64,000 bases of DNA from Eukaryota sp. TZLM1-RC (taxonomy: Eukaryota > Protista > Metamonada: BaSk clade). Each line of letters begins with the position of its first letter. The first letter of the stretch is position 1. The position numbers and the translations under genes were made by a program. Shown in pieces: positions 9,587 through 45,139 of the stretch. The DNA lies in contig JAUPSS010000001.1 in NCBI GenBank assembly GCA_040285825.1, forward strand, positions 434,001 through 498,000, written 5' to 3'. Below the pieces are notes generated by a model that saw only the letters and a list, made by a program, of their open reading frames with translations, was not told the origin of the DNA and did not search any database.

Positions 9587-10344
9587 GCATGTTACTGGGG
9601 GCTTTGGGAAAACATAGATGCTGACAAGGCAAAACGAGATCAACATTGACAAAAGATTTATGTCAGCCGATCTGAGACATCTTGTCAGAAGTCCAGAAGT
9701 CTAACAAAAAAGACGCCACAGTAATGAAACAGTGAAATTTGAGGAGCAAGTGAAAGATGTGCGATGAAAAAATAATCTAGTTGAGAGATAAGAGAGCATG
9801 GCCTCCAACGACAGTGGTGGGGCAAACGGTGAGTGTTGTAAAATTACATCGGTACAATGAGAAGCACTAGAAACGCTGACATGAATAAAGGTGTGTGCAA
9901 ATTGATGTGAGTGACATTATTTTCGCACTGACATTAATTTGGCACTCACACTGATTAAGGAAAAGGGTGTAGATACAGCCCACATTGTGTGATTTAACAA
10001 AATGTATTTCATGAGAAACCATCTTCACCACAGCTGTAACACAGATAATCTTACTTACTATTTCCCAACAGAACACCATTGTTGGAGTTCACGAGGTTTA
10101 GCTTCTTCGGTGGCACATTACGTTTTTAACAAGATTTCCCAATTCAAATTCACTTCAGTAGTATACTACAAATGTGATAAACAACTCTTAAGTAAATGAG
10201 ATTACTAATTATAATGACATCTAGATACAACAAGCAGATACAACAAGTGGAATGGGTTTCACTTTGCCAAGGCTACGAATAACAAATTTCCACTTTTATA
10301 CTGAGATATTTCAGTCTTCTTCACTTGATTCCTTCTCAACAAGA

Positions 10345-13300
10345 ATGTCCTATCCTCAACTGCCGGGGTACTTCATTACCAGACAGTTAGGTGAGGGTTC
10401 GTGTGGACGTGTCTTCTTGGCAACTTCCACATTTACCTCTCGTGACTATTGTATAAAAGAAGTACAATTCCTTTCGGATGATCAAAGAGATCGATGGGAG
10501 ACAGAGTTCTTGCCGAAGTCGTTGGATTTGTCTTACTTATGCACTGTTAGAGACACCATCACCTTCAACAATCACTACTACATTGTCATGCATCTGTATT
10601 CCAATAGCTTGACACAGATGATTTATCATCAACCACAACGCACTCATTTGATCAAAGGGACTCCCTTACACTCTGATCAGGCGTGGAACATTTTTCGGAA
10701 ACTGGTTGAAGCTGTCCATTCACTTCACCAGGAACAGTTGTGTCATATGAACATTAAGCCTGAGAACATATTCCTCGATAATGAACTTAATGCTGTTCTT
10801 GGAGACTTTGGTCACTCTCGAGCATTCATGTCTGTAAATTTGTTTACATCTGCCGCTTCCCAAGCCTACCGTGCCCCTGAAATGTCCCGAAATCTGAGCC
10901 CCGAGTATGACAAGGAGGTTGATTACTTTGCATTGGGAGTTGTTTTTTACGAAATGCTAGTTGGAGAATTGCCCTGCAATCCAAACTCTTCGAATTGTAG
11001 TATCTCCTTGTCAGCACTGAATAAAGTAGCGGATGTGGAAGCAAGGAAAATCATCCAACAGTTAACGGTTCCTAATCCTCAACTTAGAGCAAGTTTTTTT
11101 CAACTATTACATCTTAACGTCCGTCAAAAGGAAAGCTTCAAAGAGGCCACACCAAGCATCATTCTTGCCTCTCCCTATTCACCAACAATACATAATAAGG
11201 TTCAGGTTCCAGAGTTCATTTCTGACTCGTCTGACGGCGAAGGATTTCTAGCTCCATCTGCAGTCTCCCTTCCAAGGTCATCACTGAGAACTGAACTTGA
11301 TGCAATGCTTAGTGACTCTTCTGATGACGAAATGCTTCCCACAACCCCACCGCCCACCAGACAACGTAAACGACAAAAAGGAAGAAATAATGGAGGAAAC
11401 AAGAAGACAAAGACTTTTGACGTCACTTTGTTCCTTCATCCTTTACAAAATCTTCCTAAACAAACCATTTCGGAGGCTGCTGAAAATCTTGTAGAAGATG
11501 AAGTCATGATGCTAGTTGAGGAAGTCGTTAGTCAGGAATTGTTTTCTATTAAATTTACGTCACAAAGTTCCTCTACTATTGGGAAGCTAAAGGAGTTGGC
11601 TCAAAGAATTTCAATCCAACTCCCTGGCACCTTCATCCAATGCCATGTCTTTCTCCGTAGAACTGATTTGGTCGTTCTTCTTCCCCAGCAGTCTTTTGAG
11701 GAGGTGAAAGCAGTACTTTTATCTCATACAACCGCCTGTCATGTGCTATTGAGATCTACTTACATAATGGAATCCAACAGACATAGTGTCTTTGAGATTA
11801 GTGTGTTGTCAAGAAGAACTAACTGTCATGAAGCAAATAATTTGACTACAAAGTGTCTACCTTTTGTTGTCACGTATTCGTTGAATAGCAAGTTCCACTA
11901 TGTTTTTCAAGTTGGAATTAGTCCTAGAGCAGATTCTAAGCAAGCGAGAAAAGTTTTGGATGAGCGGTTCAATCTTAAGAAGAGGAACTATATTTTGGTT
12001 GTTTTTAACGCTGAGTTACTTTTGTTCACAAGTTCTAGCAATTGTCCTCTCGCAGTTGGTAACACGTTTACTATTACGAATAGCCAACAGGAAACTAACC
12101 ATGTAGTTTCCCAACTTTCTAGGTACAATTCTCCCGTTTTGTCGGCTAGAAATCACAATTCTGACTCTTCTCGATCAAACAAAAAGCCAAGAACATCAAA
12201 TAAGTCACCATCGAAGCCAAAAAATTCTTCTGCCCCAAAGACTCTCAAACCCAATCCTCCGAAGAAGACACCATCCAATTCACCTACAATTAAGTTGTTT
12301 TGGAAACCTGAAGGGATTTGCAGTATTAAGTATTTAAGAGGACTTGCAAATACTCTTACTGCCAACTCAGCATCTTCAGTTGTTGTGCATAATATTGCTG
12401 CTGGCTTCTTTCGAGTTATTTTCAGAGAATGTCAGCCCACACTAGTGGATCGATTGAATGAAATGGCACAACGAGGACGTTACATCTCAGACCAGGTTTT
12501 TATCAAAGTGTTCCGGACACTTCCAGGATTTACTGTTATGTTTGCCCCAAAAGAGTTTGAAGAAGTGAGGAACCAACTTAAACCCCTTCTTGAAGGAAGT
12601 GAAATTATTAAAATTCGATCTATCGATCTGGGCAATCAATTCGGATATTTACATAATTTAATTGTTAATTCTGATGTAGATAGCGCTGCTGAGCTCTTAC
12701 ATAGAGTTTCTGGCACTTCCCTATCTTTTGTGGTTTCAAGGTATATTGATGGTAAACATATCTGCATTTATGAGCTTGGTGTCTTACCTTTTGTTAATTT
12801 AGTCGATGTGGCCACTGTTTTGGACAGCGAGTGTGATTTGGTTTCTATGAACAGTGTCTTGTATCCTTTTAACCGTCGCTTACTCTTGATTTCGGCTCGA
12901 CATAACTCTAATTCTAAGCCGCCCCTTCCTTCCAAAATAAAGTTTAATATTACTACTGAGGTGGGTTCCGCTAAGAATGAAGTTTTTTATATTCGAAATT
13001 ACAGTGCATCTTCACCAATCCCTCTTCTTTTGCCTGGAGAGGAGCCTCATATAAACTTGGCTCAACACTATGAATGTTTACTCAAACTTGATCCGAGTCA
13101 ACACTTCAAAACTTTGTTAACCAAGGTTTCATCATGCCAAAGTACTTTGGGTAGATTGAGCTACATTAGTCTTATTTATGCTTTAATTCAAGCCCATACC
13201 ATCGCCTCAGTGCGTGAGGGTTTCTATAAGCGCCTTTTGTCTGGGGAAGAAGAGAACATTAAGGTTGGGCTCAACCTCCACCAGCTTGAAAACACCTGCT

Positions 13301-16300
13301 ATTCATTTAACGATCTTTATGATCTCAACTATTCTTCTACTTTACCTTTATCTTGTAGAAGTGTGGATGTTTTACAAGACGATTCTCTGAATTGTGCATT
13401 AAATCTCGATCCAACTACTAACCGTGTTGGTGTCCTCAACATGGCTAATGAGGAACATCCTGGTGGTGGTTATCTCACGGGTGCCAGTGCTCAGGAAGAA
13501 TCACTTTTCAGAAGAACAACTCTAGGTGCTGCTTTGGATCCTGAACAGTATGGTGGACAGGTAGTTTCTGGTCAAAGGGTAGCATATCCATGGAAAACAG
13601 CTAAAATTGATGTTGTAGTTACCGAAAATGTGGAAATTTTCAAAACAACGGAAGCTACTGGATGTCAATTGCTTGAAAAACCACAAAGAGTTACCATTAT
13701 AAGTACTGCTGCTCCTCAGGAGCCAGAAATCTCAGAAGTTGAAAACTTTGGTGAAGACTATGCTCATTTTGATGATTTACAATTACTATACAAGAGATGG
13801 ACTTGTGTCTTTTTAGCTGCTATTAAACACGGAATTACTCATTTAGTGATTTGCCCTCTTGGTTGTGGAGCTTTCAGAAACCCTATTCCCGGTGCAATGA
13901 CTGTTTTATCATTTGTACTTTCCATTTTCCACAAGTTTTTTGATTCAATTACACTCAGTGCTTCTGAAGATCTTTATTCCAGCTGTGCATCATTATTAAG
14001 TGTTCAATCTATTAATGAATCTCGCCAGCTCAAACTCCCTTGTAGGTACCTTCTCAGTGAGTGTCCTTACATTAATGATTCCATTCACCGTGACCAGTTT
14101 GTTCATCCCACACATTGCCCTAATGGCAATTCGTGTTTAATGAAAAATTCACTTACACATGCTTCATTGCTTAAACATCCTGAAAAATGCAGAAAATTCA
14201 GTAATTGTGAATTACATGGCAAAGATTCAGTACATGACTCTTTGCATGATCACGCTGATCCTTGTCAAATGGGTGTTTATTGCACAGATTATTCTGATCA
14301 CCACCGTCGATCACTCTTCCATCCTCCTCTCTGTCCACAAGGAGTGGGTTGTTCAAACAGGACTAGTTGTCTCTATTCTCATGAAAGGGTTCAATGTCCC
14401 AACCCAAACTGTGTTGATTTAACTAGTGATCACCTGAACTCATTCAACCATTCACCCTTGGCTGACGATCCATTTGTTAACATCGAAAGTAGATGTATGG
14501 AGAGGTTTGTCTGTCGACACGGTAGGTCATGTAATAATAACGAACCTGAACATACTGAAAGGTTTATCCACATTGTTCGTCCAGAATGTCTTGGATGTGC
14601 ATCCTCCGATGAGGTTCATCTTTCAACGTACCATCACGTTGGCGTCCAAGACCTTCGTCCTTCGTGTCCTAATGGTGCAGCTTGTAAGAATTTGCTAAAC
14701 TTAAACCATGTGTATGAGTTTAGCCATCCGTCAAGCAAAGCTTTTGATATTGTTGGCAATTTGACTCCTCCTTCAAGGGGTTCAGAAGATCAAATTGATT
14801 TTTCACTCAATGTGGATCGTTTAGCTGGTTTTTGCATACCTCCAAACCAACAAACTCCACTGAATATCACCTCTATTGCTCACTTCATTCTTGGATTAAA
14901 ACCAGTTCATAGAATAAACGTGGAACCATTTCTTTCTTGCTTGGTCCATGGCAACTTCTATTCTCTAGAATATATGAAGACACAACTTTCTCAACCAGAA
15001 AGTGTTTTCTCCATTGCTCATGGCCACTTTAAACTCCATAGATACAGTAATCGTGCAGCAGTTGCTGATTATGTAGCTTTGGCAGCAAAGAATAAGTTTC
15101 TTGACATGAGAAACTTTGCATCGGATTATGGTGCTCAACAAGAAGCAAAGAGATTATTAATGATGAATGACACCGCTGACCTTGATGAACTGGCTGATTC
15201 TATTGCGGAAGCTGCCAATGAACTCAACAATTTGGCTACTAAGGAAAAATCCCGACAGGAGGATTGGAATTGGTTACCGCAAGGACAAAGAGCTCGGCAC
15301 CGATAAAACTGTATTTGCCAATCTTGGACCAAACACGTACAAGTCATATGGTCCCATTGCCATTTTCTTTAAGGAAGAGCTCACCAAGCACCCTGCCTCC
15401 TTTTTACACCTCACTGCCGCGACCTTCCATTACAGTCAGCCTGGATTGAAGTATCGAAGCCATGTCCCCGTTCCTGGAGAAGCCCACACCCCAGAACGTA
15501 TTGATTTTTACTACAAGTTGATACAAAATCTTGGTTGTTTAAAGGCTGCAGAAACGCTTGCTTGGGATTTGGCTAAGATGGTGGTTGAATATCGTCAACA
15601 GAAAAGAGGCGAATCAAGGCATGTAACTGATGTTACAGTTGAAGATTGTATCAATATGATGCTCAAATTGAACAGCCATAATTCTTTTGAATGTCACCTC
15701 CCTTCATCCATTCCCTTTTCACATGTTCGCCACATATTAATGCCTAAAGCCACGTTTGACTCGCTGCCACCAAATGTTCAACAGCAGCTATTTGAGATGG
15801 GAAATCTTGTCGATGATTTTTTGAAGGTTATTGACGGGGATGAAACATCAAAAGAATACAAAGATGTCATGAAAAAACTTTCAAGTACCACTGTTGATAA
15901 TGATAATGTTGCCTCTTTCCAAGGGTATAGCTTCGTTTTGAAAGCGTTGCCCTTTTTCACTATTCCCGAGTCCATTGGAGTTTCAGAACCTATTCATATC
16001 GCTTTCAGTGTAATGGCTTCATCAAACTTTCATGTGTTGCTTGTGATTGAAGGGTATTCAACTTTACGATTTGCCTTTCAACAAGGTACAATTTCCCTTT
16101 ATACGAACCAGAATGATCTTCTTTGTAGGCAAAGATTGTATTTCCCTTCAAGATTGGCTCAATTGTACCTGCGCTTTGGTCTTTCTGTTGAACGTGCAAC
16201 TGGTAAGATATTACTGCAACGAATTGGAAAGGAATGTAGCTTCAAGTTTGATCCTTTACAGTTTACGTTAGCTGAACCTATCACTTCCACTAATCCTTGT

Positions 16301-17020
16301 TATATTGGATTCAAATTAGACGGTGATGGTTATGCTTCGTTTAAGAATGTTTTGCTTAAAGCCTCTAGAACGATGATTTCTACGGTATCAGGTAGTGCTG
16401 CTGAACTTACGCTTAATCGTTTTAATTCTAATACTTTAGCATCTGATCCACCATTAGGAAATAAACGTGATTCAGATGACGATCCAGATTCTTCATTATC
16501 ATCATTGAGAATTAATCCTGACGAAAATGTTGATACTTCACGTGTGAATAACGTAGAAGCTCCACCTACTGAACGCAATCCACTTTGTCCTCATCCCTGG
16601 ACTTGTTCCTTCTACTATGATGACAAAAGGGCAAGAACTTCTCAAGGGGTACAGCATCAATCCAACTATCGCCACATATGTCGTTTCGGATATTCATGTA
16701 GAAACATAAATGATACAAACCACACAGACCATTTTATCCATATTCAACGTGAAAAATGTCCACAAGGGGAGAGTTGTAGAGAAATTGCCGATCCTGTTCA
16801 TCGCTTCAACTATGCTCATGGTACGCTCCATCTTATTCCATACAAGTGCAAGCATGGAAGTAACTGTCGTCGAAAGGAATCTCCGTCTTGCTTCAGAAAA
16901 TATGGTCACTGGGAAGTGGATAATGATCCTAGTGGTGTTGTTATGCCCAACTTACAATCAAATGATCGTTCTCTTTCAGGATTTCTCCATAGAGTGGCTT
17001 CAGCTATAGGCTTTAACTGA
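10345..17020 (+). CDS. Pseudokinase / microbial-type PARG / PBZ zinc fingers / putative ADP-ribosyltransferase fusion protein, copy A; one +1 frameshift at 15245-15249
   Basis: ORFs 10252-15306 and 15167-17020 join when one A is removed, matching copy B. Kinase GEGSCG..HMNIKPEN..DFG..APE; PARG LNMAN..PGGGY..GASAQEE..GCGAFRNP; 13 C-x-C-x-H-x-H/CCCH fingers. Start assumed at ATG 10345 (upstream ATG at 10252). Confidence 0.82.
13417..16949 (+). repeat. Left arm of a 3.5-kb near-identical inverted repeat (partner 38175-41706)
   Basis: Direct comparison shows only scattered substitutions and one 1-bp indel (3533 vs 3532 bp). Confidence 0.95.
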
Positions 17021-21714: not shown

Positions 21715-22330
21715 TACATTACATGATGCTGTTAGAGACACTGTTTTCAATATGGCACAAACTGCAAGGATATCGTGTGTCAAAGAGCCCCTGCTGAAGG
21801 AAACACTTTCTCTGAATAATTTTGGTTCTGATGATAGAGGTGTATACTGTGATTGGATTGATAATTTTGAAGTTATTGTGGACTTTGTCTCATGTAATGT
21901 TGCAAATGATACTTTGGTTGACAGAAAAAAACTTAATCCTGTGGCTGCTCTGAATTTTAAAGCAAAAGAGAAACATAGAAAATATGATAAAGATATTGAG
22001 GATGCTAATGTCGATAGAAATACACAGCTGGTTTTTATTGCTTTCCCATTTTCGATAAATGGAAGATTATCAGATGAAGCAGAAACTTTTTTGAATGACT
22101 TCCAAAAAATGGTGCAGGAAAAAACAATGAAAAGATTTGATATTTTTTTATGGCGTTCACGGATTCAAATTGCCATTATTAATAGATTACCGCGGTTTTT
22201 CAATCGAATAAGAGAAGCTTTAGCTAGACAGCAAGCAAATCAAGATTTTGTAGAGGAAATCTTGATTCATTGATAGTCGTCCCATTAGTAATGAATTAAT
22301 ATAAGTAAGTGTACATGTTCAATAAATATA
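21715..22330 (+). mobile_element. CRE-like RLE domain and 3' end (same family as 36754-37880)
   Basis: HDAVRD, EPLL, DDRG..VDFVS..KEKHRKY, FPFSING; 3' UTR ends aataaatata. Confidence 0.88.
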
Positions 22331-36753: not shown

Positions 36754-37880
36754 TATATTTATTGAATTTGCACACTTGATTAAATTAAATCATAACTAAT
36801 GGGACGACTATCATTAAACCAAGATTTCCTCTACAAAATTTTGATTTGCTTGCTGTCTAGCTAAAGCTTCTCTAATTCGATTGAAAAACCGCGGTAATCT
36901 ATTAATAATGGCAAATTGAATCCGTGAACGCCATAAAAAAATATCAAATCTTTTCATTGTTTTTTCTTTCACCATTTTTTGGAAGTCATCCAAAAAAGTT
37001 TCTGCTTCAACTGATAATCTTCCATTTATCGAAAATGGGAAAGCAATAAAAACCAGCTGTGTATTTCTATCGACATTTGCATCTTCAATTTCTTTATCAT
37101 ATTTTCTATGTTTTTCTTTTGCTTTAAAATCCAGAGCAGCCACAGGATTAAGTTTTCTTCTGTGAACCAAAGTATCGTTTGCAACATTACATGAGACAAA
37201 GTCAACAATAGCTTCAGAATTATCAATCCAATCACAGTATACATCACCTCTGTCATCAGAACTAAAATTATTCAGAGAAAGTGTTTCCTTCAGCAGGGGC
37301 TCTTTGATACACGATATCCTTGCAGTTTGTGCCATATTGAAAACAGTGTCTCTAACAGCATCATGTAATGAAGAACGATAAGTTATCAATTTAGAGCAAT
37401 TTAGAGCATGGCGCAAAGTGAGTTGAGGTGAATTCGAACAAATACATTTTTCTTTTGATAATAATTGGTTAATGGGGATGTTCAAATATAATCTCATTTT
37501 TGTTACAAATGCTTCATTAGTGGCACACAATCCAAATCTTCGTGGTACAATGGTTACAAAAAGTGAAGAATCTGACGCCTTGTTTTCACAAACACCCTTT
37601 TCCAATAACAATGAGTGAAGATCTTGATTTAAAACAGCCGAGCTGCAAATATTATTATAAGGATCTTTTTCATACATTCCAGTCAATCTTTTCTGTAATG
37701 TTCGAAGAGTGTACTTCAAATTTAAAACATTTTTTTCTGGAATATTGCCATTGAATGATTGGGGAAAACATCGACCCCATTTTTCTACATCAATTCTTGA
37801 AATTTCTTCATTTAATGCAAAAACAGTGGAACTTTGCGTTGTCATCAATAAATCTTCCCAATCTGCAAATCTTTCGACAG
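36754..37880 (-). mobile_element. 5'-truncated CRE-like non-LTR element with open 344-aa CCHC+RLE frame (36814-37848)
   Basis: CICSNSPQLTLRHALNC, HDAVRD, RGDVY..VDFVS..KEKHRKY; 3' end aataaatata. Confidence 0.9.
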
Positions 37881-38163
37881 ATTCAACACATTATTTGCCA
37901 AAATTGGCTATGAAACACCAGATGATTGAACAGCCTTGTCTTAATTGCATCAAGCACTGCAAAAGTAATAATTTGATGAGCAGACTAAGAACCACAAATG
38001 TTCTCCCTTGCAATGATCTTATCTTCGAGATTATAATGTTGGACTATAACATTACAAGAACAGAAAAGGTCCCAAGCATTTAAAAGTATACTTTATTTTT
38101 ACAATGAAAAACAGTTGAATGGTTCTTTGATTCAGAATTCGAAAATGAAAACAACCAACCATT

Positions 38164-41100
38164 CTAGTTTAATCTGGGCATAACAACACCACTAGGATCA
38201 TTATCCACTTCCCAGTGACCATATTTTCTGAAGCAAGACGGAGATTCCTTTCGACGACAGTTACTTCCATGCTTGCACTTGTATGGAATAAGATGGAGCG
38301 TACCATGAGCATAGTTGAAGCGATGAACAGGATCGGCAATTTCTCTACAACTCTCCCCTTGTGGACATTTTTCACGTTGAATATGGATAAAATGGTCTGT
38401 GTGGTTTGTATCATTTATGTTTCTACATGAATATCCGAAACGACATATGTGGCGATAGTTGGATTGATGCTGTACCCCTTGAGAAGTTCTTGCCCTTTTG
38501 TCATCATAGTAGAAGGAACAAGTCCAGGGATGAGGACAAAGTGGATTGCGTTCAGTAGGTGGAGCTTCTACGTTATTCACACGTGAAGTATCAACATTTT
38601 CGTCAGGATTAATTCTCAATGATGATATTGAAGACTCTGAATCGCCAAGTGAATCACCGTGAATTTCTAATGGTGGATCAGAAGCTAAAGTATTAGAATT
38701 TAAACGATTAAGCGTAAGTTCAGCAGCACTATCTGATACCGTAGAAATCATCGTTCTAGAGGCTTTAAGCAAAACATTCTTAAACGAAGCATAACCATCA
38801 CCGTCTAATTTGAATCCAATATAACAAGGATTAGTGGAAGTGATAGGTTCAGCTAACGTAAACTGTAAAGGATCAAACTTGAAGCTGCATTCCTGTCCAA
38901 TTCGTTGCAGTAATATATCACCAGTTGCACGTTGAACAGAAAGACCAAAGCGCAGGTATAATTGAGCCAATCTTGAAGGGAAATACAATCTTTGCCTACA
39001 AAGAAGATCATTCTGGTTCGTATAAAGGGAAATTGTACCTTGTTGAAAGGCAAATCGTAAAGTTAAATACCCTTCAATCACAAGCAGCACATGAAAGTTT
39101 GATGAAGCCATTACACTGAAAGCGATATGAATAGGTTCTGAAACTCCAATGGACTCGGGAATAGTGACAAATGGCAACGCTTTCAAAACAAAGCTATACC
39201 CTTGGAAAGAGGCAACATTATCATTATCAACAGTGGTACTTGAAAGTTCTTTCATAACATCCTTGTATTCTCTTGATGTTTCATCCCCGTCAATAACCTT
39301 CAAAAAATCATCGACAAGTTTTCCCATCTCAAATAGCTGCTGTTGAACATTTGGTGGTAACGAGTCAAACGTGGCTTTAGGCATTAATATGTGGCGTACA
39401 TGTGAAAAGGGAATGGATGAAGGGAGGTGACATTCAAAAGAATTATGGCTGTTCAATTTGAGCATCATATTAATGCAATCTTCAACTGTAACATCAGTTA
39501 CATGCCTTGATTCGCCTCTTTTCTGTTGACCAAATTCAACCACCATCTTAGCCAAATCCCAAGCAAGCGTTTCTGCAGCCTTTAAACAACCAAGATTTTG
39601 TATCAACTTGTAGTAAAAATCAATACGTTCTGGGGTGTGGGCTTCTCCAGGAACGGGGACATGGCTTCGATACTTCAATCCAGGCTGACTGTAATGGAAG
39701 GTCGCGGCAGTGAGGTGTAAAAAGGAGGCAGGGTGCTTGGTGAGCTCTTCCTTAAAGAAAATGGCAATGGGACCATATGACTTGTACGTGTTTGGTCCAA
39801 GATTGGCAAATACAGTTTTATCGGTGCCGAGCTCTTTGTCCTTGCGGTAACCAATTCCAATCCTCCTGTCGGGATTTTCCTTAGTAGCCAAATTGTTGAG
39901 TTCATTGGCAGCTTCCGCAATAGAATCAGCCAGTTCATCAAGGTCAGCGGTGTCATTCATCATTAATAATCTCTTTGCTTCTTGTTGAGCACCATAATCC
40001 GATGCAAAGTTTCTCATGTCAAGAAACTTATTCTTTGCTGCCAAAGCTACATAATCAGCAACTGCTGCACGATTACTGTATCTATGGAGTTTAAAGTGGC
40101 CATGAGCAATGGAGAAAACACTTTCTGGTTGAGAAAGTTGTGTCTTCATATATTCTAGAGAATAGAAGTTGCCATGGACCAAGCAAGAAAGAAATGGTTC
40201 CACGTTTATTCTATGAACTGGTTTTAATCCAAGAATGAAGTGAGCAATAGAGGTGATATTCAGTGGAGTTTGTTGGTTTGGAGGTATGCAAAAACCAGCT
40301 AAACGATCCACATTGAGTGAAAAATCAATTTGATCTTCTGAACCCCTTGAAGGAGGAGTCAAATTGCCAACAATATCAAAAGCTTTGCTTGACGGATGGC
40401 TAAACTCATACACATGGTTTAAGTTTAGCAAATTCTTACAAGCTGCACCATTAGGACACGAAGGACGAAGGTCTTGGACGCCAACGTGATGGTACGTTGA
40501 AAGATGAACCTCATCGGAGGATGCACATCCAAGACATTCTGGACGAACAATGTGGATAAACCTTTCAGTATGTTCAGGTTCGTTATTATTACATGACCTA
40601 CCGTGTCGACAGACAAACCTCTCCATACATCTACTTTCGATGTCAACAAATGGATCGTCAGCCAAGGGTGAATGGTTGAATGAGTTCAGGTGATCACTAG
40701 TTAAATCAACACAGTTTGGGTTGGGACATTGAACCCTTTCATGAGAATAGAGACAACTAGTCCTGTTTGAACAACCCATTCCTTGTGGACAGAGAGGAGG
40801 ATGGAAGAGTGATCGACTGTGGTGATCAGAATAATCTGTGCAATAAACACCCATTTGACAAGGATCAGCGTGATCATGCAAAGAGTCATGTACTGAATCT
40901 TTGCCATGTAATTCACAATTATTAAATTTTCTGCATTTTTCAGGATGTTTAAGCAATGAAGCATGTGTAAGTGAATTTTTCATTAAACACGAATTGCCAT
41001 TAGGGCAATGTGTGGGATGAACAAACTGGTCACGGTGAATGGAATCATTAATGTAAGGACACTCACTGAGAAGATACCTACAAGGGAGTTTGAGCTGACG

Positions 41101-44100
41101 AGATTCATTAATAGATTGAACACTTAATAATGATGCACAGCTGGAATAAAGATCTTCAGAAGCACTGAATGTAATTGAAGCAAAAAACTTGTGAAAAATG
41201 GAAAGTACAAATGATAAAACAGTCATTGCACCGGGAATAGGGTTTCTGAAAGCTCCACAACCAAGAGGGCAAATCACTAAATGAGTAATTCCGTGTTTAA
41301 TGGCAGCTAAAAAGACACAAGTCCATCTCTTGTATAGTAATTGTAAATCATCAAAATGAGCATAGTCTTCACCAAAGTTTTCAACTTCTGAGATTTCTGG
41401 CTCCTGAGGAGCAGCAGTACTTATAATGGTAACTCTTTGTGGTTTTTCAAGCAATTGACATCCAGTAGCTTCCGTTGTTTTGAAAATTTCCACATTTTCG
41501 GTAACTACAACATCAATTTTAGCTGTTTTCCATGGATATGCTACCCTATGGCCAGAAACTACCTGTCCACCATACTGTTCAGGATCCAAAGCAGCACCTA
41601 GAGTTGTTCTTCTGAAAAGTGATTCTTCCTGAGCACTGGCACCCGTGAGATAACCACCACCAGGATGTTCCTCATTAGCCATGTTGAGGACACCAACACG
41701 GTTAGTGGTAGGATCAAGGCCAATCGCACATTCAAGACAGTCTTTTCGAGAGACTTTGATACCCTGACATGACCTAGCAGAGAAACCAGAAAAATCCAAG
41801 TCAATAAAATTTTCAAAAGAGAATATTGAATTGCATAACCCACGAACCTGGAGAGACACTAAAGTGTTTTTGTTTGATGACTTGCTATAAATCTCGTAAC
41901 TCTGATGTTGCATAGTTTCAATTGTGTGAGTCTGAATAAGACACAAGACAAGACGATGCTGTTTGATCAACCAAGGATCTGATGAAGCCATGGATTCCTT
42001 CAACAATTTCGCAAAAAGAGAAACCGGATAATGACTGACAAGTTCATTGACACAGAATCTCACATGAGGCTCTTGGTTTCCCTGAAGCTTGGGAATAGAC
42101 CAAGAATGAATATAAGGTCGAACTTTTGAAATTTGAGAATGAATTGTTCCTTGTTCGCTATTAATCACCAGACTGTCTCCTACAGAAAGGGGACAATTAT
42201 CACTGTCTGGAAACAGCAACAATTTGGAATGATACACTGCAGCAGTATACTTACGATGTTGCCTTAAAGAATCTGCTTTGATCGCATCAGCGGTTAAATA
42301 AAGATCAACTTCAGGAGAAAGAAAAATTTCAAAAACGTCATAATAAACGGCATTAGAAGAATTTGTCACAATGAAGGGTAATTGGAGACTACAAATACGG
42401 GCAATTTGGGCTTCAAGACTACTGGATGGATCAAATGAGAACACCAACACATTGAAACCAAAAACTGTTCTCTTGTTAAAGAAATACCTTCTTTTTGGAA
42501 CCACCTTGCAATTTTTCAAGTAAAGTTCCAATGTTCTAGAAACGACACAAAAATCGGAAGGAGCGAGTAAAACAGTGATCTCATGTTGAGAAGAGTAAAC
42601 ATCAATAGAAAGCTCAGGAGTTTGTATATTTCTGGACACAATGATTTCATTTAAAACCTCACAAACACTATCATCGCATCCATTGAAACCAACAGAAAAG
42701 AATCCACCTTCCACCGAATTGACAGATGTCTTGACAGAAGAACTAACAAGTTTGTCAGCTATCTTTTTTATATCATTCCGAGAGCATTTGGATTGTGGAT
42801 ACCAAAACAATTTAATATTGCATAGTTTAAAACTCTGAAGAGGAAGTGTGTTGGGATGGCCAGCAGCATTAACATTTGATTGAGAATTGCAAGGGAATAT
42901 TCCAGTAATAACAATTTCAATGCTACGCTGATTTTTGAGAATTGTTGCAGTATCATTGACTGAAACAGGACAAACATCTTTGTAATAGAATAAGAAAATT
43001 TTTCCTTTGAAGATGCACAAAAATGAAGGACTCTTAGAGATGTCCAACTTCTTACTCAGTTCCCTGACTTCTTGCTCTTCAGTTAGAGCTGGTATCATTT
43101 GGATTTCAAAAGCAAATTTCAAATTCACAATTGATGTCATGACAAACGGAAACGACAAAGCAGGGTCAGTAATTCTATTGATACAAATACTTTTATCAGA
43201 ATCATTCGAGAAAACATCAAATTCGATAATAGAGCCAATTTTTGAGGAGATATAAACAGTTTTCTTTATCAAAAATAAATACTCTGGAAATATATTTTGT
43301 AGCTGAGATCTAATAACTCTTTCTTCATCAAAACAAAATGAAGCAGAGCATTGAATTCTGTTTCTGAATACTTGGAAATAGTATCCTGTATACCTGTCGG
43401 TGAACCCCCTGTTTGAAACAACAATATTTAATAATGTGGATAGAAATAGTTCTTGTGAAATAAAATTGACTGCATAGCAACCATTCTTCATAGGCATTAC
43501 ATTAATGTTAGTAAAAGTCGAAACAATGGTTGTAACAGCTCGTTTTACAGAGTCACAATCAGTGGAAACATTGGGAATGAGGTAAAGCGTCTTAGTAAAG
43601 GAAGACGGGCGATTCCTCGAAAGTTTACACAAAACTGGCAAAGATGGTCCTTGAATTGTTAGTTCACCACCATCAAGGGTGCTTTCAAGGTTGCGTATCT
43701 CCTGAGCATCAGTATTAATTTTAATTGTAAATAGACCAGTTTTTCCTTGCTTTACCTCTACACTCCCTTCATCATTGAATCTATACTTAAAATGACGGAG
43801 AATGTAGTCACGATCTAAAGGTTCATGTGGTTGGAGGAAGAAAGTAGTTTCCATGAGGGATAATGCAAATGGAATAGAACATTCATCTTCTGAAGATGAG
43901 TCACTAAGCACGTTATTCACATTAGTCAACGAAGATGTTTTTGAATGAGAGGGCGTTCCTATGGGTGAGTTGCTGATAATGGGGAAATTAGAGTTTGAAG
44001 CAGTTGGTTGTGGTAGAGATTGACTTAAAGTTCCAATACCCATCTGATTTCTTAAATTTGATACAATTGACTTGAAATTACAAGTACGCTTCCGGGGATC

Positions 44101-44823
44101 AGAAACAGTTAGTTGCATAATGATTTCCCTAGCCCTTACATCACTAACTCTTTCCAGTGATTCCCTGCTAATGTAACGGTGATGAGAACTTAGGTCGTAT
44201 GGAAAGATACCAACCAGCATCTCATATAAAATGACACCCAATGCGAAGTAATCCACAGCAGGACTATAACGAGCTGTGTCCATCATTTCAGGAGCATGAT
44301 AGGGTTTGGTTTGTCTAGTTTCAAAAACATCAGCCGATCTAGTCTCAAACATACGTATCCCATCATAATCACAAATGGCTGAATTGTTATTATCATCGAG
44401 AAGTATATTTTCAGGTTTTAGATCTCGATGACAGTAATTTCGACTGTGGAGGAACTCGGTCCCTTCAACCAACTGATTAAAGATCTTGAAAGCAACATCG
44501 TAAGGCAAAGCTGTTCCGCGAGTGTCGATTTTGCGGTAAATGACTCCATAAATCTTTTGAGTGAGGTTTGAGGGAAAATACTTCATGACAACATGGACTT
44601 TTCCATCATCAGTAAAGATGTCTAATATAGGGCAAAGGGAGTTATGGTCATTGGACAGTTGTTGGATCTCCCTATATGATTGAAGACGTTCAGGTTTTGC
44701 GTTGAGAACAATTTTGATGGAGCACAGAAGTCCATCACTACGACAGGTTTTGTATACACTACCCTCACCACCCTCTCCGATAAGATGCCAATCTGTATAA
44801 TCAGATTTGCTGAATCTGAACAT
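38164..44823 (-). CDS. Kinase / microbial-type PARG / PBZ zinc fingers / putative ADP-ribosyltransferase fusion protein, copy B (intact, ~2,219 aa)
   Basis: Uninterrupted ORF, first ATG at 44823. Kinase GEGGEG..IK..HRDLKPEN..DYD..APE; PARG GGG..QEE..GCGAF; 9+4 Zn fingers; ART-like VHR..G..S / VFANLG..YG / FECHLP. Confidence 0.9.
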   Translation of the reverse strand: MFRFSKSDYTDWHLIGEGGEGSVYKTCRSDGLLCSIKIVLNAKPERLQSYREIQQLSNDHNSLCPILDIFTDDGKVHVVMKYFPSNLTQKIYGVIYRKIDTRGTALPYDVAFKIFNQLVEGTEFLHSRNYCHRDLKPENILLDDNNNSAICDYDGIRMFETRSADVFETRQTKPYHAPEMMDTARYSPAVDYFALGVILYEMLVGIFPYDLSSHHRYISRESLERVSDVRAREIIMQLTVSDPRKRTCNFKSIVSNLRNQMGIGTLSQSLPQPTASNSNFPIISNSPIGTPSHSKTSSLTNVNNVLSDSSSEDECSIPFALSLMETTFFLQPHEPLDRDYILRHFKYRFNDEGSVEVKQGKTGLFTIKINTDAQEIRNLESTLDGGELTIQGPSLPVLCKLSRNRPSSFTKTLYLIPNVSTDCDSVKRAVTTIVSTFTNINVMPMKNGCYAVNFISQELFLSTLLNIVVSNRGFTDRYTGYYFQVFRNRIQCSASFCFDEERVIRSQLQNIFPEYLFLIKKTVYISSKIGSIIEFDVFSNDSDKSICINRITDPALSFPFVMTSIVNLKFAFEIQMIPALTEEQEVRELSKKLDISKSPSFLCIFKGKIFLFYYKDVCPVSVNDTATILKNQRSIEIVITGIFPCNSQSNVNAAGHPNTLPLQSFKLCNIKLFWYPQSKCSRNDIKKIADKLVSSSVKTSVNSVEGGFFSVGFNGCDDSVCEVLNEIIVSRNIQTPELSIDVYSSQHEITVLLAPSDFCVVSRTLELYLKNCKVVPKRRYFFNKRTVFGFNVLVFSFDPSSSLEAQIARICSLQLPFIVTNSSNAVYYDVFEIFLSPEVDLYLTADAIKADSLRQHRKYTAAVYHSKLLLFPDSDNCPLSVGDSLVINSEQGTIHSQISKVRPYIHSWSIPKLQGNQEPHVRFCVNELVSHYPVSLFAKLLKESMASSDPWLIKQHRLVLCLIQTHTIETMQHQSYEIYSKSSNKNTLVSLQVRGLCNSIFSFENFIDLDFSGFSARSCQGIKVSRKDCLECAIGLDPTTNRVGVLNMANEEHPGGGYLTGASAQEESLFRRTTLGAALDPEQYGGQVVSGHRVAYPWKTAKIDVVVTENVEIFKTTEATGCQLLEKPQRVTIISTAAPQEPEISEVENFGEDYAHFDDLQLLYKRWTCVFLAAIKHGITHLVICPLGCGAFRNPIPGAMTVLSFVLSIFHKFFASITFSASEDLYSSCASLLSVQSINESRQLKLPCRYLLSECPYINDSIHRDQFVHPTHCPNGNSCLMKNSLTHASLLKHPEKCRKFNNCELHGKDSVHDSLHDHADPCQMGVYCTDYSDHHSRSLFHPPLCPQGMGCSNRTSCLYSHERVQCPNPNCVDLTSDHLNSFNHSPLADDPFVDIESRCMERFVCRHGRSCNNNEPEHTERFIHIVRPECLGCASSDEVHLSTYHHVGVQDLRPSCPNGAACKNLLNLNHVYEFSHPSSKAFDIVGNLTPPSRGSEDQIDFSLNVDRLAGFCIPPNQQTPLNITSIAHFILGLKPVHRINVEPFLSCLVHGNFYSLEYMKTQLSQPESVFSIAHGHFKLHRYSNRAAVADYVALAAKNKFLDMRNFASDYGAQQEAKRLLMMNDTADLDELADSIAEAANELNNLATKENPDRRIGIGYRKDKELGTDKTVFANLGPNTYKSYGPIAIFFKEELTKHPASFLHLTAATFHYSQPGLKYRSHVPVPGEAHTPERIDFYYKLIQNLGCLKAAETLAWDLAKMVVEFGQQKRGESRHVTDVTVEDCINMMLKLNSHNSFECHLPSSIPFSHVRHILMPKATFDSLPPNVQQQLFEMGKLVDDFLKVIDGDETSREYKDVMKELSSTTVDNDNVASFQGYSFVLKALPFVTIPESIGVSEPIHIAFSVMASSNFHVLLVIEGYLTLRFAFQQGTISLYTNQNDLLCRQRLYFPSRLAQLYLRFGLSVQRATGDILLQRIGQECSFKFDPLQFTLAEPITSTNPCYIGFKLDGDGYASFKNVLLKASRTMISTVSDSAAELTLNRLNSNTLASDPPLEIHGDSLGDSESSISSLRINPDENVDTSRVNNVEAPPTERNPLCPHPWTCSFYYDDKRARTSQGVQHQSNYRHICRFGYSCRNINDTNHTDHFIHIQREKCPQGESCREIADPVHRFNYAHGTLHLIPYKCKHGSNCRRKESPSCFRKYGHWEVDNDPSGVVMPRLN
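38175..41706 (-). repeat. Right arm of the 3.5-kb inverted repeat
   Basis: Reverse complement of 13417-16949. Confidence 0.95.
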
Positions 44824-45139
44824 TTGAGATGAAGGGATGAGGCTATTCAAAAGAACAAGTTGAGAAATTGATGAAATTTTTCCAACTTCAAATTGTGTTG
44901 TTCAAATTGGGTTCTGGTTTATTCCATTTCCATCATCAAGCGAGAATTTGTTTCATCGTTGAATATAAGTTTTCATAATCTTTTGAAGAACAGTGCTAAA
45001 GATTTAGGTTATATTTCAAAAATTTTGTTGAACTACAGAATTAAATAAAATTATATCAGAATAATTGGAACTAAAATCTACGAACCAAAATTTCCCATAC
45101 AAATTTCCGATCTGCTTGTTTTCTCGCCATTGCATTCGT

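Follow-up and report, generated by a model that had tools for sequence, protein, structure and literature searches.

A Skoliomonas gene joining a protein kinase to a bacterial-type PARG, PBZ-type zinc fingers and a domain of ADP-ribosyltransferase fold

A single-exon gene next to satellite and transposon fragments

The window analyzed here is a stretch of 64,000 nucleotides from Skoliomonas sp. TZLM1-RC, an anaerobic flagellate. Its minus strand contains an unbroken open reading frame (38164-44850), whose first ATG lies at 44823 and whose product has 2,219 amino acids (Table 1). The earlier note on this DNA, made from its letters, had put the frame at ~2,220 residues, and the NCBI assembly (GCA_040285825.1, contig JAUPSS010000001.1, 472164-478823) carries the identical 2,219-residue product as one uninterrupted, single-exon gene on that strand. 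The gene is real and intact, and because the frame is unbroken its domains are predicted to lie on one mRNA. All of the motifs quoted earlier were located in the translation: HRDLKPEN at aa 132, GGG-x7-QEE at aa 1055-1067, GCGAFRNP at aa 1188, VHR at aa 1536, LVHGNFYS at aa 1548, LGTDKTVFANLG at aa 1665, HNSFECHLP at aa 1793 and IPFSHVRHI at aa 1804.

Table 1. Features of the gene and their positions in the window
Feature	Position (nt)	Strand	Residues, extent and basis
Whole gene	38164..44823	-	2,219 codons plus stop, single exon; ORF list, translation, NCBI gene call
Ser/Thr protein kinase domain	44038..44796	-	aa 10-262; Pfam Pkinase, E 1e-37
Region without assigned domain	41944..43866	-	aa 320-960; no Pfam family
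Bacterial-type PARG macrodomain (predicted)	41119..41931	-	aa about 965-1235; PF10021 and TIGR02452
N-terminal PBZ-like array, nine fingers	40396..41082	-	aa 1248-1476; pattern search
ART-fold domain, undescribed family	39289..40251	-	aa 1525-1845; homologs, alignment, AF2, Foldseek, VIA-align, Atlas
Concanavalin A/legume-lectin-like beta-sandwich	38734..39201	-	aa 1875-2030; jackhmmer, AF2, Foldseek, VIA-align
C-terminal PBZ-like array, four fingers	38215..38544	-	aa 2094-2203; alignment to A. vaga P0038 array
3' 3.6 kb (PARG to stop), one arm of inverted duplication	38146..41742	.	repeat search, substitution count

The other arm of the inverted duplication (13381-16978) is 97-99% identical to the 3' part of the gene and carries a frameshift. 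The gene also adjoins a 12-kb satellite and transposon fragments. Both the surroundings and the frameshifted twin would suit a segmental duplicate of recent origin, lying in DNA rich in transposons and either unexpressed or degenerating into a pseudogene. We regard such decay or silence as very improbable. A 6.7 kb open frame at 35-40% G+C cannot persist by chance, the catalytic motifs of three enzymes are all retained, and many of the changes relative to the twin are synonymous (synonymous to nonsynonymous, 14:13 and 20:29).

Kinase, PARG and zinc-finger arrays

The Ser/Thr-type kinase described earlier is borne out by the Pfam match (PF00069; 130 bits, cut-off 31.7) and by retention of the catalytic residues: K37 (the beta3 Lys), E52 (the alphaC Glu), HRD at 132-134 with D134, N139, D152 and APE at 177-179. 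Its sequence matches in the PDB are CDKL, CDK1 and BRSK2, at E about 1e-19. Missing from the earlier description is the replacement of the usual D-F-G by D152-Y-D154. The earlier list of domains also passed over about 700 residues (aa 300-960) between the kinase and the PARG. No Pfam family matched aa 320-960, and Atlas offered RRM_PARP14-like leads only, all of them sub-threshold. A module of ~240 residues in this region (aa 665-901, nt 42121-42831) is common to the Skoliomonas paralogs, with P0003, P0001 and P0002 as its only phmmer matches.

The macrodomain that follows exceeds the cut-offs of both PF10021 (E 7e-17; 62.6 bits, cut-off 23.5) and TIGR02452 (E 1.2e-17; 64.3 bits, cut-off 50). 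Its catalytic signature GGG-x7-QEE is intact (GGGYLTGASAQEE, aa 1055-1067), and GCGAFRNP (aa 1188-1195) provides the Gly-rich loop for diphosphate binding. The GGG..QEE and GxGxF loops both align with those of the T. curvata PARG (3SIG, E 5.7e-14) and of the D. radiodurans PARG (E 5e-10). Profile and signature alike point to the bacterial-type poly(ADP-ribose) hydrolase that had been proposed, and we predict this activity for the domain.

The zinc fingers number 13 in two arrays, a pattern search having returned the nine and four counted before. Their spacing is mostly C-x5-C-x7-H-x5-H, with a middle loop one residue longer than in the classic PBZ finger; the exact PBZ spacing, C-x5-C-x6-H-x5-H, is present in one finger (aa 1405-1424), and two fingers are CCCH. 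The earlier likening to PBZ holds by homology, but not by the scores of these fingers themselves, which reach at best 13.1 and 12.8 bits against the Pfam PBZ model (PF10283), below its gathering score of 22.7. The homology is with a protein of the rotifer Adineta vaga (P0038). Its fingers align with the C-terminal array (E 3e-10), finger 11 lying opposite a 44-bit PBZ hit. The A. vaga array passes as PBZ (E 2e-11), and its PBZ-scoring finger has the x7 loop as well. Of 40 family members, 10 match the PBZ model at E <= 0.001 (best 2e-11), and 435 PBZ-spaced fingers were observed in the family where shuffling gives an expectation of 0.15. This homology supports the assignment of the fingers as PBZ-type, and thereby as putative ADP-ribose readers.

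A domain with the fold of ADP-ribosyltransferases

The family of the domain between the arrays counts at least 173 proteins, and Pfam has no model for it. Its AF2 model (pLDDT 95.1, pTM 0.92) includes a helical insert of ~95 residues (about aa 1556-1650). Exhaustive comparison of this model with 48,161 PDB chains by VIA-align placed SopF, OspC3, CopC, DarT1, DarT and Tpt1 in the nine best chains (Z 9.1-12.0). Mouse Tpt1 (Z 6.0) and an uncharacterized NMR structure (Z 5.8) occupy ranks 10 and 11, and unrelated helical chains begin at Z 5.7; PARP1 attains only Z 3.7. The shape neighbours in Atlas are clusters of DUF3626 (the SopF family), DarT, DarT-macro and ART-PolyVal. The top matches of this pLDDT-95 model in Foldseek and VIA-align are all ADP-ribosyltransferases, and no other strong matches were seen. 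Of the earlier proposal of an ART fold like that of DarT, the ART fold thus stands, but the nearest folds are SopF and OspC rather than DarT, since they score Z 12 and 10 against 9-9.6. Searches against Pfam, PDB sequences and PADLOC gave no match for the domain. In particular, when 47 copies of the domain were compared with Pfam at E up to 1 and with PADLOC at E up to 10, no copy matched DarT, and the SopF family profile PF12294 (DUF3626) did not match either, so that the likeness to SopF is at the level of fold only.

An alignment of 47 sequences shows H1537, S1555, D1662, F1672, Y1683, E1797 and H1799 to be 94-98% conserved (H1537 96%; F1672, Y1683 and E1797 94% each), and these residues, the last two as E1797-x-H1799, form a candidate NAD site. 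The VHR pointed out earlier is present and contains the near-invariant histidine (H1537, in 'PVHR'), while the histidine of 'LVHG' (H1550) is less conserved. On the model the conserved His, aromatic and Glu residues sit on strands 36-40, 172-176 and 298-301, which are the first, the third and the one that follows the long loop. Fold model and conserved ART-type residues together support assignment of the domain to the ART fold, as a predicted enzyme.

Structural comparison with the best match, SopF of Salmonella (DUF3626, PF12294; PDB codes 7DN8 and 7DN9), extends over ~200 residues (Z 12.0-12.2, rmsd 3.6-3.7). SopF likewise presents Glu-x-His on the catalytic strand: its E325-A-H327, read from a published E325A primer, matches E1797-x-H1799, and it has two aromatic residues for nicotinamide (PMC11937434). 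SopF differs in that it is secreted by bacteria as an effector, is switched on by host ARF and modifies Gln124 of ATP6V0C, and its sequence relationship to our protein is undetectable. The Skoliomonas protein is eukaryotic, carries the helical insert and is fused to PARG, fingers, lectin-fold domain and kinase. The ADP-riboxanases OspC3 of Shigella and CopC of Chromobacterium also have an ART-like fold (Z 9.6-10.3, ~205 residues). Their H-F-E triad with its essential E-x-H, and an Asp that precedes the Phe by ~10-11 residues, run parallel to H1537, D1662, F1672 and E1797-x-H1799; in CopC the site is H137-F183-E325/H327, and D172 lies eleven residues ahead of F183 (PMC9239266). These enzymes differ in having ankyrin repeats and in needing calmodulin; they have no sequence-level match to our protein, and the second catalytic Asp of CopC, D230, has no assigned counterpart in it. 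We infer the residue equivalences to the CopC and SopF triads from strand order, spacing and conservation rather than from residue-level superposition.

A fused toxin and antidote in the manner of DarTG would read the same domains otherwise. The ART domain might then ADP-ribosylate bases or ends of DNA or RNA, as do DarT and Tpt1, with the macrodomain reversing or restraining it, in a defence or repair effector directed at nucleic acids. The fold matches strongly those of DarT1, DarT and Tpt1 (Z 9.1-9.6), the DarT and DarT-macro clusters appear in Atlas, and the union of a writer with a macrodomain recalls DarTG; the N-terminal 'H-x...S-I-L..G' motif probably resembles DarT and PARP. We nevertheless judge this reading by analogy quite unlikely. 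The protein-modifying SopF and OspC3/CopC score higher (Z 10-12) and share the E-x-H and D...F features with our domain, the Tpt1 match covers its NAD lobe alone, and the DarT profile is silent. DarT of the DarTG toxin-antitoxin pair (PF14487; ART fold, Z 8.5-9.6) is matched with a macrodomain eraser, but the sole macrodomain here is PARG-type, not DarG/TARG1-type, and the protein contains no DarG-type antitoxin partner. Writer and eraser are moreover held on one eukaryotic polypeptide, together with readers and a kinase.

Family architecture and a proposed mechanism

The beta-sandwich (AF2 pLDDT 85) matches lectin and galectin in Foldseek and gives Z 12-13.4 over 142 residues in VIA-align. 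It was detected by jackhmmer in 40 of 151 family proteins (domain E < 1e-3), always C-terminal to the ART domain, and PARG lies N-terminal to ART in 40 of the 151. The ART family spans metamonads, rotifers and Diphylleia. When the architecture was sought in eukaryotes, the core order of PARG, fingers, ART, sandwich and fingers recurred in Skoliomonas paralogs, in Kipferlia and in bdelloid rotifers, as in A. vaga P0038 (PARG 722-882, ART ~1342-1694, beta-sandwich ~1821-1991, PBZ 2167-2190). The core is not unique to this gene. Its product is a member of an undescribed eukaryotic family that combines bacterial-type PARG, a PBZ-type array, a new ART-fold domain, a ConA-like sandwich and further PBZ-type fingers, and the N-terminal kinase is a Skoliomonas addition to that core, the rotifer protein having none. 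Slade 2011 and Perina 2014 (PMC4245714) had already remarked on the fusion of bacterial-type PARG to PBZ in A. vaga; the latter gives the A. vaga PARG only its PBZ fingers and leaves the intervening ART and lectin-fold domains unmentioned. The animal pathway of PARP1, APLF/CHFR (PBZ) and PARG similarly comprises a writer, a PBZ reader and a PARG eraser acting on ADP-ribose, but as three separate proteins and with a PARP as writer; the eraser of our protein is of the bacterial type.

A four-part description, writer, reader and eraser plus kinase, is supported by sequence, by fold and by the residues that are conserved. We lean towards a PARG-PBZ-ART-sandwich-PBZ family member with an added kinase, for which the following mechanism is proposed. 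The ART domain would bind NAD+ through H1537, F1672/Y1683 and E1797 and transfer ADP-ribose to a substrate offered by the neighbouring beta-sandwich. Since the closest folds, those of SopF and OspC/CopC, have the D...F...E-x-H pattern in common with our domain, a protein side chain is a likelier substrate than DNA. With its 13 PBZ-type fingers the enzyme would stay bound to oligomers or polymers of ADP-ribose, where the PARG in cis may trim the chains, either resetting the signal or restraining self-modification. The kinase could phosphorylate proteins assembled at the modified site, or regulate its own enzyme. A chain of this kind, with kinase, eraser, reader fingers and a writer-fold domain, may form an ADP-ribose signalling machine complete in itself, of a sort not yet studied. 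Against the proposal stand finger scores of 13 bits against 22.7 and the longer middle loop of most fingers, DYD for DFG, and the position in transposon-rich DNA beside the frameshifted twin.

Bacterial-type PARG cleaves ribose-ribose bonds, and would therefore lack a substrate if the ART domain only mono-ADP-ribosylates, unless canonical PARPs supply polymer. A bolder version of the proposal makes the ART domain a non-PARP builder or extender of ADP-ribose chains, so that the polypeptide alone would run a complete polymer cycle of SopF/OspC-like writing, holding by 13 PBZ fingers and erasing by PARG. The constant company of polymer-specific PBZ and PARG with ART across distant eukaryotes allows such a reading, which we consider quite doubtful. 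Were it true, a continuous cycle would make the protein a switchable effector under kinase control that consumes NAD+ or produces free ADP-ribose, for instance to defend the cell from viruses or mobile elements.

Alternatively, the protein may only read and erase, the ART fold being a pseudoenzyme or a module that binds NAD+ or ADP-ribose, and the PBZ fingers bringing a kinase-bearing PARG to poly(ADP-ribose) made by the ordinary PARPs of the cell. Polymers are what PBZ and PARG act on, and their known makers are PARPs; eukaryotic ART-fold pseudoenzymes such as LRRC9 are known (PMC7955679). We find this unlikely, as the His, the aromatic residue and the Glu-x-His show 94-96% conservation in metamonads, rotifers and Diphylleia alike, a pattern of a working active site that is unexpected in pseudoenzymes. 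The catalytic Glu that both SopF and CopC require is retained.

Three enzyme-type domains and two finger arrays in one gene

ADP-ribose writers, readers and erasers are normally separate proteins. The gene studied here, from a Skoliomonas (Eukaryota sp. TZLM1-RC is an anaerobic, free-living, soda-lake metamonad of this group), combines in one reading frame three domains of enzyme type, all with their catalytic motifs intact, and two arrays of PBZ-type fingers. The minus strand is open without interruption from 38164 to 44850, and its first ATG, at 44823, yields 2,219 residues; in local DNA of 35-40% G+C, a 6.7-kb ORF is far beyond chance. An identical product is annotated as a single unbroken gene at 472164-478823 of JAUPSS010000001.1 (GCA_040285825.1). 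The single ORF of ~2,220 residues described in an earlier note is therefore present, and every motif quoted there was found where the note had placed it. The proposed domain order holds for the domains named, but a stretch of ~700 residues that separates the kinase from PARG (aa 300-960) is missing from it.

The Ser/Thr-type kinase proposed for the N-terminus is supported by Pfam (E 1e-37) and by retention of the glycine loop, K37, E52, H132-R-D134, N139 and A177-P-E179. It aligns with CDKL, CDK, BRSK and Aurora kinases at ~1e-19. The usual D-F-G reads D152-Y-D154, so the magnesium-binding aspartate, D152, is retained. For aa 300-960, Pfam gives nothing significant (top match PMM, E 0.0062, 16.8 bits, below the 22.4 cut-off), and BLASTP finds no self-repeat. 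Feature searches of the Atlas return no match for aa 661-960, and for aa 310-660 only chance-level rows resembling RRM_PARP14, the RRM repeats of PARP14 (0.75-0.77).

The assignment of a bacterial-type PARG from its GGG..QEE motif is borne out by PF10021 (E 7e-17) and TIGR02452 (E 1.2e-17, aa 1019-1220). The domain aligns with the solved PARGs of T. curvata and D. radiodurans, and its catalytic loop (GGG-x7-QEE) and diphosphate loop (G-x-G-x-F) both line up with theirs.

Most fingers are spaced C-x5-C-x7-H-x5-H; a single finger keeps to the classic PBZ spacing, and another two are CCCH. The C-terminal array aligns (E 3e-10) with that of P0038, an Adineta vaga member of the family, and finger 11 faces a P0038 finger that scores 44 bits as PBZ (E 2e-11) and is likewise x7-spaced. 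Because of this alignment and common spacing, we read the fingers as probable divergent PBZ-type fingers, which may bind ADP-ribose polymers. The earlier PBZ-like assignment thus gains homology to a PBZ-scoring array, although the protein's own fingers reach only 13 bits with the Pfam PBZ model, under its 22.7-bit threshold. Across 151 listed family proteins there are 435 PBZ-spaced fingers, compared with 0.15 in shuffled sequences.

Coordinates of the domains, duplicated segments and related genes (window positions in nucleotides; residues numbered in the protein under study)
Feature	Window position	Strand	Residues	Remarks
Protein kinase		-	10-249	
Region without family assignment	41944-43866	-	~640 aa	kinase to PARG; no family matched
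Module common to the protein and its paralogs		-	665-901	~240 residues; present twice in copy A
Bacterial-type PARG		-	~965-1235	
First finger array		-	1248-1476	nine fingers
ART domain		-	1525-1845	core shared by homologs, 1525-1831
Beta-rich domain		-	1875-2030	immediately C-terminal to the ART domain
Second finger array		-	2094-2203	four fingers
Inverted duplicate, gene under study	38146-41742	-		3.6 kb, PARG to stop
Inverted duplicate, copy A side	13381-16978	+		
Copy A	10252-15306	+		second kinase-PARG-ART gene; 3' end within 13381-16978
Copy A kinase	10252-11100	+		
Copy A frameshift	~15246 (15241-15250)	+	~1649	mid-ART
Copy A open frame past the shift	15167-17020	+		
ORF just downstream of the gene	36814-37848	-		
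Inverted segments common to that ORF and the satellite edge	36754-37370 / 21717-22330			
Other ART-domain proteins				P0006, 582 aa, 6.9-Mb contig, TZLM1-RC; P0004, P0007-P0010, GEM-RC1

The predicted ART fold and its candidate catalytic site

Searched with aa 1490-2040, a set of 1.84 billion representative proteins yielded 173 matches at E up to 1e-3. Neither the ART region nor its 46 homologous copies matched a Pfam family or a PADLOC model, and the region matched no known family in NCBIfam. Against PDB sequences, single-sequence and profile searches gave only unrelated proteins (best E 0.046 and 0.12). When stand-alone homologs were sought with a word-indexed profile search, two Skoliomonas fragments were the only matches.

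Structure comparison provides the assignment. The AlphaFold2 model built from the alignment of 47 copies has a mean pLDDT of 95.1 and a pTM of 0.92. As the earlier note had proposed, this model was submitted to Foldseek; its top matches are all ARTs, with SopF first (E 1.3e-4), followed by DarT1, OspC3, M. tuberculosis DarT, CopC and Thermus DarT. VIA-align of these matches gives Z 12.2 for SopF (199 residues, rmsd 3.6), 9.8-10.3 for OspC3 and CopC, 8.5-9.6 for DarT1 and DarT and 9.3 for yeast Tpt1; the following chain has Z 5.2. Exhaustive alignment to 48,161 PDB representatives, independent of Foldseek, places the same nine ART enzymes on top (Z 9.1-12.0). After them come mouse Tpt1 (Z 6.0), an uncharacterised NMR structure (Z 5.8) and, from Z 5.7 downward, unrelated helical proteins that match the helical insert only. 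Neighbors in the ESM Atlas, bacterial clusters of similar shape among them, are a cluster from rotifers that bears PBZ, hypothetical proteins of bacteria, DarT clusters, ART-PolyVal and a cluster of DUF3626, the family of SopF (PMC6682159). These comparisons give an ART fold good support. The ART fold, which the earlier note took to be like DarT, stands, but the bacterial virulence effectors SopF and OspC3/CopC are closer than the DarT toxin among these nearest structural relatives.

Three other assignments were rejected. A Tpt1-like RNA 2'-phosphotransferase matches by the NAD lobe alone (111 residues), PARP1, representing PARP-type writers, reaches only Z 3.7, and LRRC9-ART (PMC7955679) is a separate family.

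Near-invariant positions in the alignment are P1535, H1537, S1555, D1662, T1667, F1672, G1676, Y1683-G1684, H1697-P1698, H1793, E1797 and H1799-L-P. The histidine stressed in the earlier note, that of LVHG, is less conserved; the invariant residue is H1537, of PVHR. In the model, strand 1 carries H1537 and strand 3 carries F1672, while E1797 stands at the start of the strand after a long loop. D1662 precedes F1672 by ten residues, Y1683 follows it, and E1797-C-H1799 forms an E-x-H. The 11-residue spacing from F1672 to Y1683 is presumably also that of Y896 and Y907 in PARP1. CopC uses H137-F183-E325, with H327 and D172 also essential, and OspC3 uses E326/H328 (PMC9239266). SopF requires Y224, Y240 and E325, and its E325A primer reads Y-I-[E]-A-H-I-H, that is, E-x-H (PMC11937434). 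From strand order, spacing and conservation, rather than residue-level superposition, we infer that the conserved positions are equivalent to the CopC, OspC3 and SopF sites. With these residues in place, a protein that reads and erases ADP-ribose through its fingers and PARG and carries a dead ART domain appears unlikely.

An ART and lectin-fold pair and its family

The ART and lectin-fold domains form a conserved pair. Of the 151 family proteins listed, 40 carry the beta-rich domain (domain E < 1e-3), always C-terminal to the ART domain. Its model (pLDDT 85) is a jelly roll of the concanavalin A/legume-lectin kind; VIA-align gives Z 12-13.4 across 142 residues, and Foldseek matches lectins and galectins. 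This beta-sandwich may partner the ART domain in binding a substrate or ligand.

PARG lies N-terminal to the ART domain in 40 of the 151. When 40 full-length members were scanned with Pfam, 13 had PARG, 10 had PBZ, 4 had a kinase and 2-3 had VWA. The family proteins with a named source come from Skoliomonas TZLM1-RC and GEM-RC1, Kipferlia bialata, Diphylleia rotans (transcriptome) and the bdelloid rotifers Adineta, Rotaria and Didymodactylos. The order PARG, ART, sandwich, PBZ is the same in the A. vaga protein as in the gene studied here; a Kipferlia member (P0018) reads PARG, ART, VWA. Among the family proteins listed, kinase fusions occur only in Skoliomonas and in one protein of unknown origin. 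One of the 40 members also bears a classical NAD:arginine ART (PF01129, E 3.8e-13).

A quick tree joins the protein to its TZLM1-RC paralogs P0001 and P0002 within a Skoliomonas clade, itself part of a wider metamonad clade; the rotifer proteins form a clade of their own. In each of the two Skoliomonas genomes the ART domain occurs in five or more genes or gene fragments, a lineage-specific expansion.

The bacterial-type PARG of A. vaga with its PBZ repeats was already noted (PMC4245714; PMC6445106), and the ART domain accounts for what separates PARG from the PBZ fingers in these rotifer proteins, reported in 2011-2014. The ART-fold family appears to be new: it has no Pfam model, and the literature found, which did not cover the 2015 ART review of Aravind et al., describes neither its ART nor its lectin-fold domain. 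Metamonads, bdelloid rotifers and Diphylleia have its ART domain permanently coupled to PBZ and PARG, and in Skoliomonas a kinase is coupled to it as well.

In the mechanism we propose, the ART domain would use NAD+ to ADP-ribosylate a substrate that the sandwich domain selects. DNA would be a somewhat less likely target than a protein side chain, since SopF and OspC/CopC, with which the domain has the E-x-H and D...F features in common, are nearer to it than DarT. A writer acting on nucleic acids with its antidote in the same chain, after the manner of the toxin-antitoxin pair DarTG, would suit the DarT matches and the PARG; with the effectors ahead of DarT, we consider it quite improbable. 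In the proposed protein modifier, the fingers would tether the enzyme to ADP-ribose chains, PARG would trim these chains or block self-modification, and the kinase would provide a phosphorylation input or output. The constant pairing of the ART domain with two polymer-specific modules, PBZ and PARG, would allow a less likely reading, that it makes the chains itself; to our knowledge, the only makers of poly(ADP-ribose) are PARPs. If active, the domain would be a eukaryotic counterpart of the bacterial effector enzymes among its nearest relatives and a compact experimental system for ADP-ribose signaling. It might then also offer a second way to make ADP-ribose polymers or to consume NAD+ under regulation.

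The inverted twin and local context

The 3' part of the gene has an inverted duplicate, 97-99% identical, that includes the end of copy A, a second kinase-PARG-ART gene. The two proteins are 52% identical overall and ~35% (estimated by eye) in their N-terminal halves. Near-identical catalytic halves beside diverged N-terminal halves point to recent gene conversion, as judged from the two copies. Copy A has AAAAA where the gene under study has AAAA, which shifts its frame. The frame downstream is still open, so the shift may be an assembly error in a homopolymer or else a very recent mutation. That the gene under study is itself a silent, decaying copy seems highly improbable; its own reading frame is unbroken. 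The kinases of the pair also differ: the gene under study has HRD and DYD, and copy A has HMN for HRD, hence no catalytic aspartate, and retains DFG.

The two genes flank a 12-kb satellite. Immediately downstream of the gene under study, an ORF contains inverted segments that are 94-98% identical to the satellite edge and 85-92% identical to satellite units; as these segments are common with the satellite, the ORF is probably transposon-derived.
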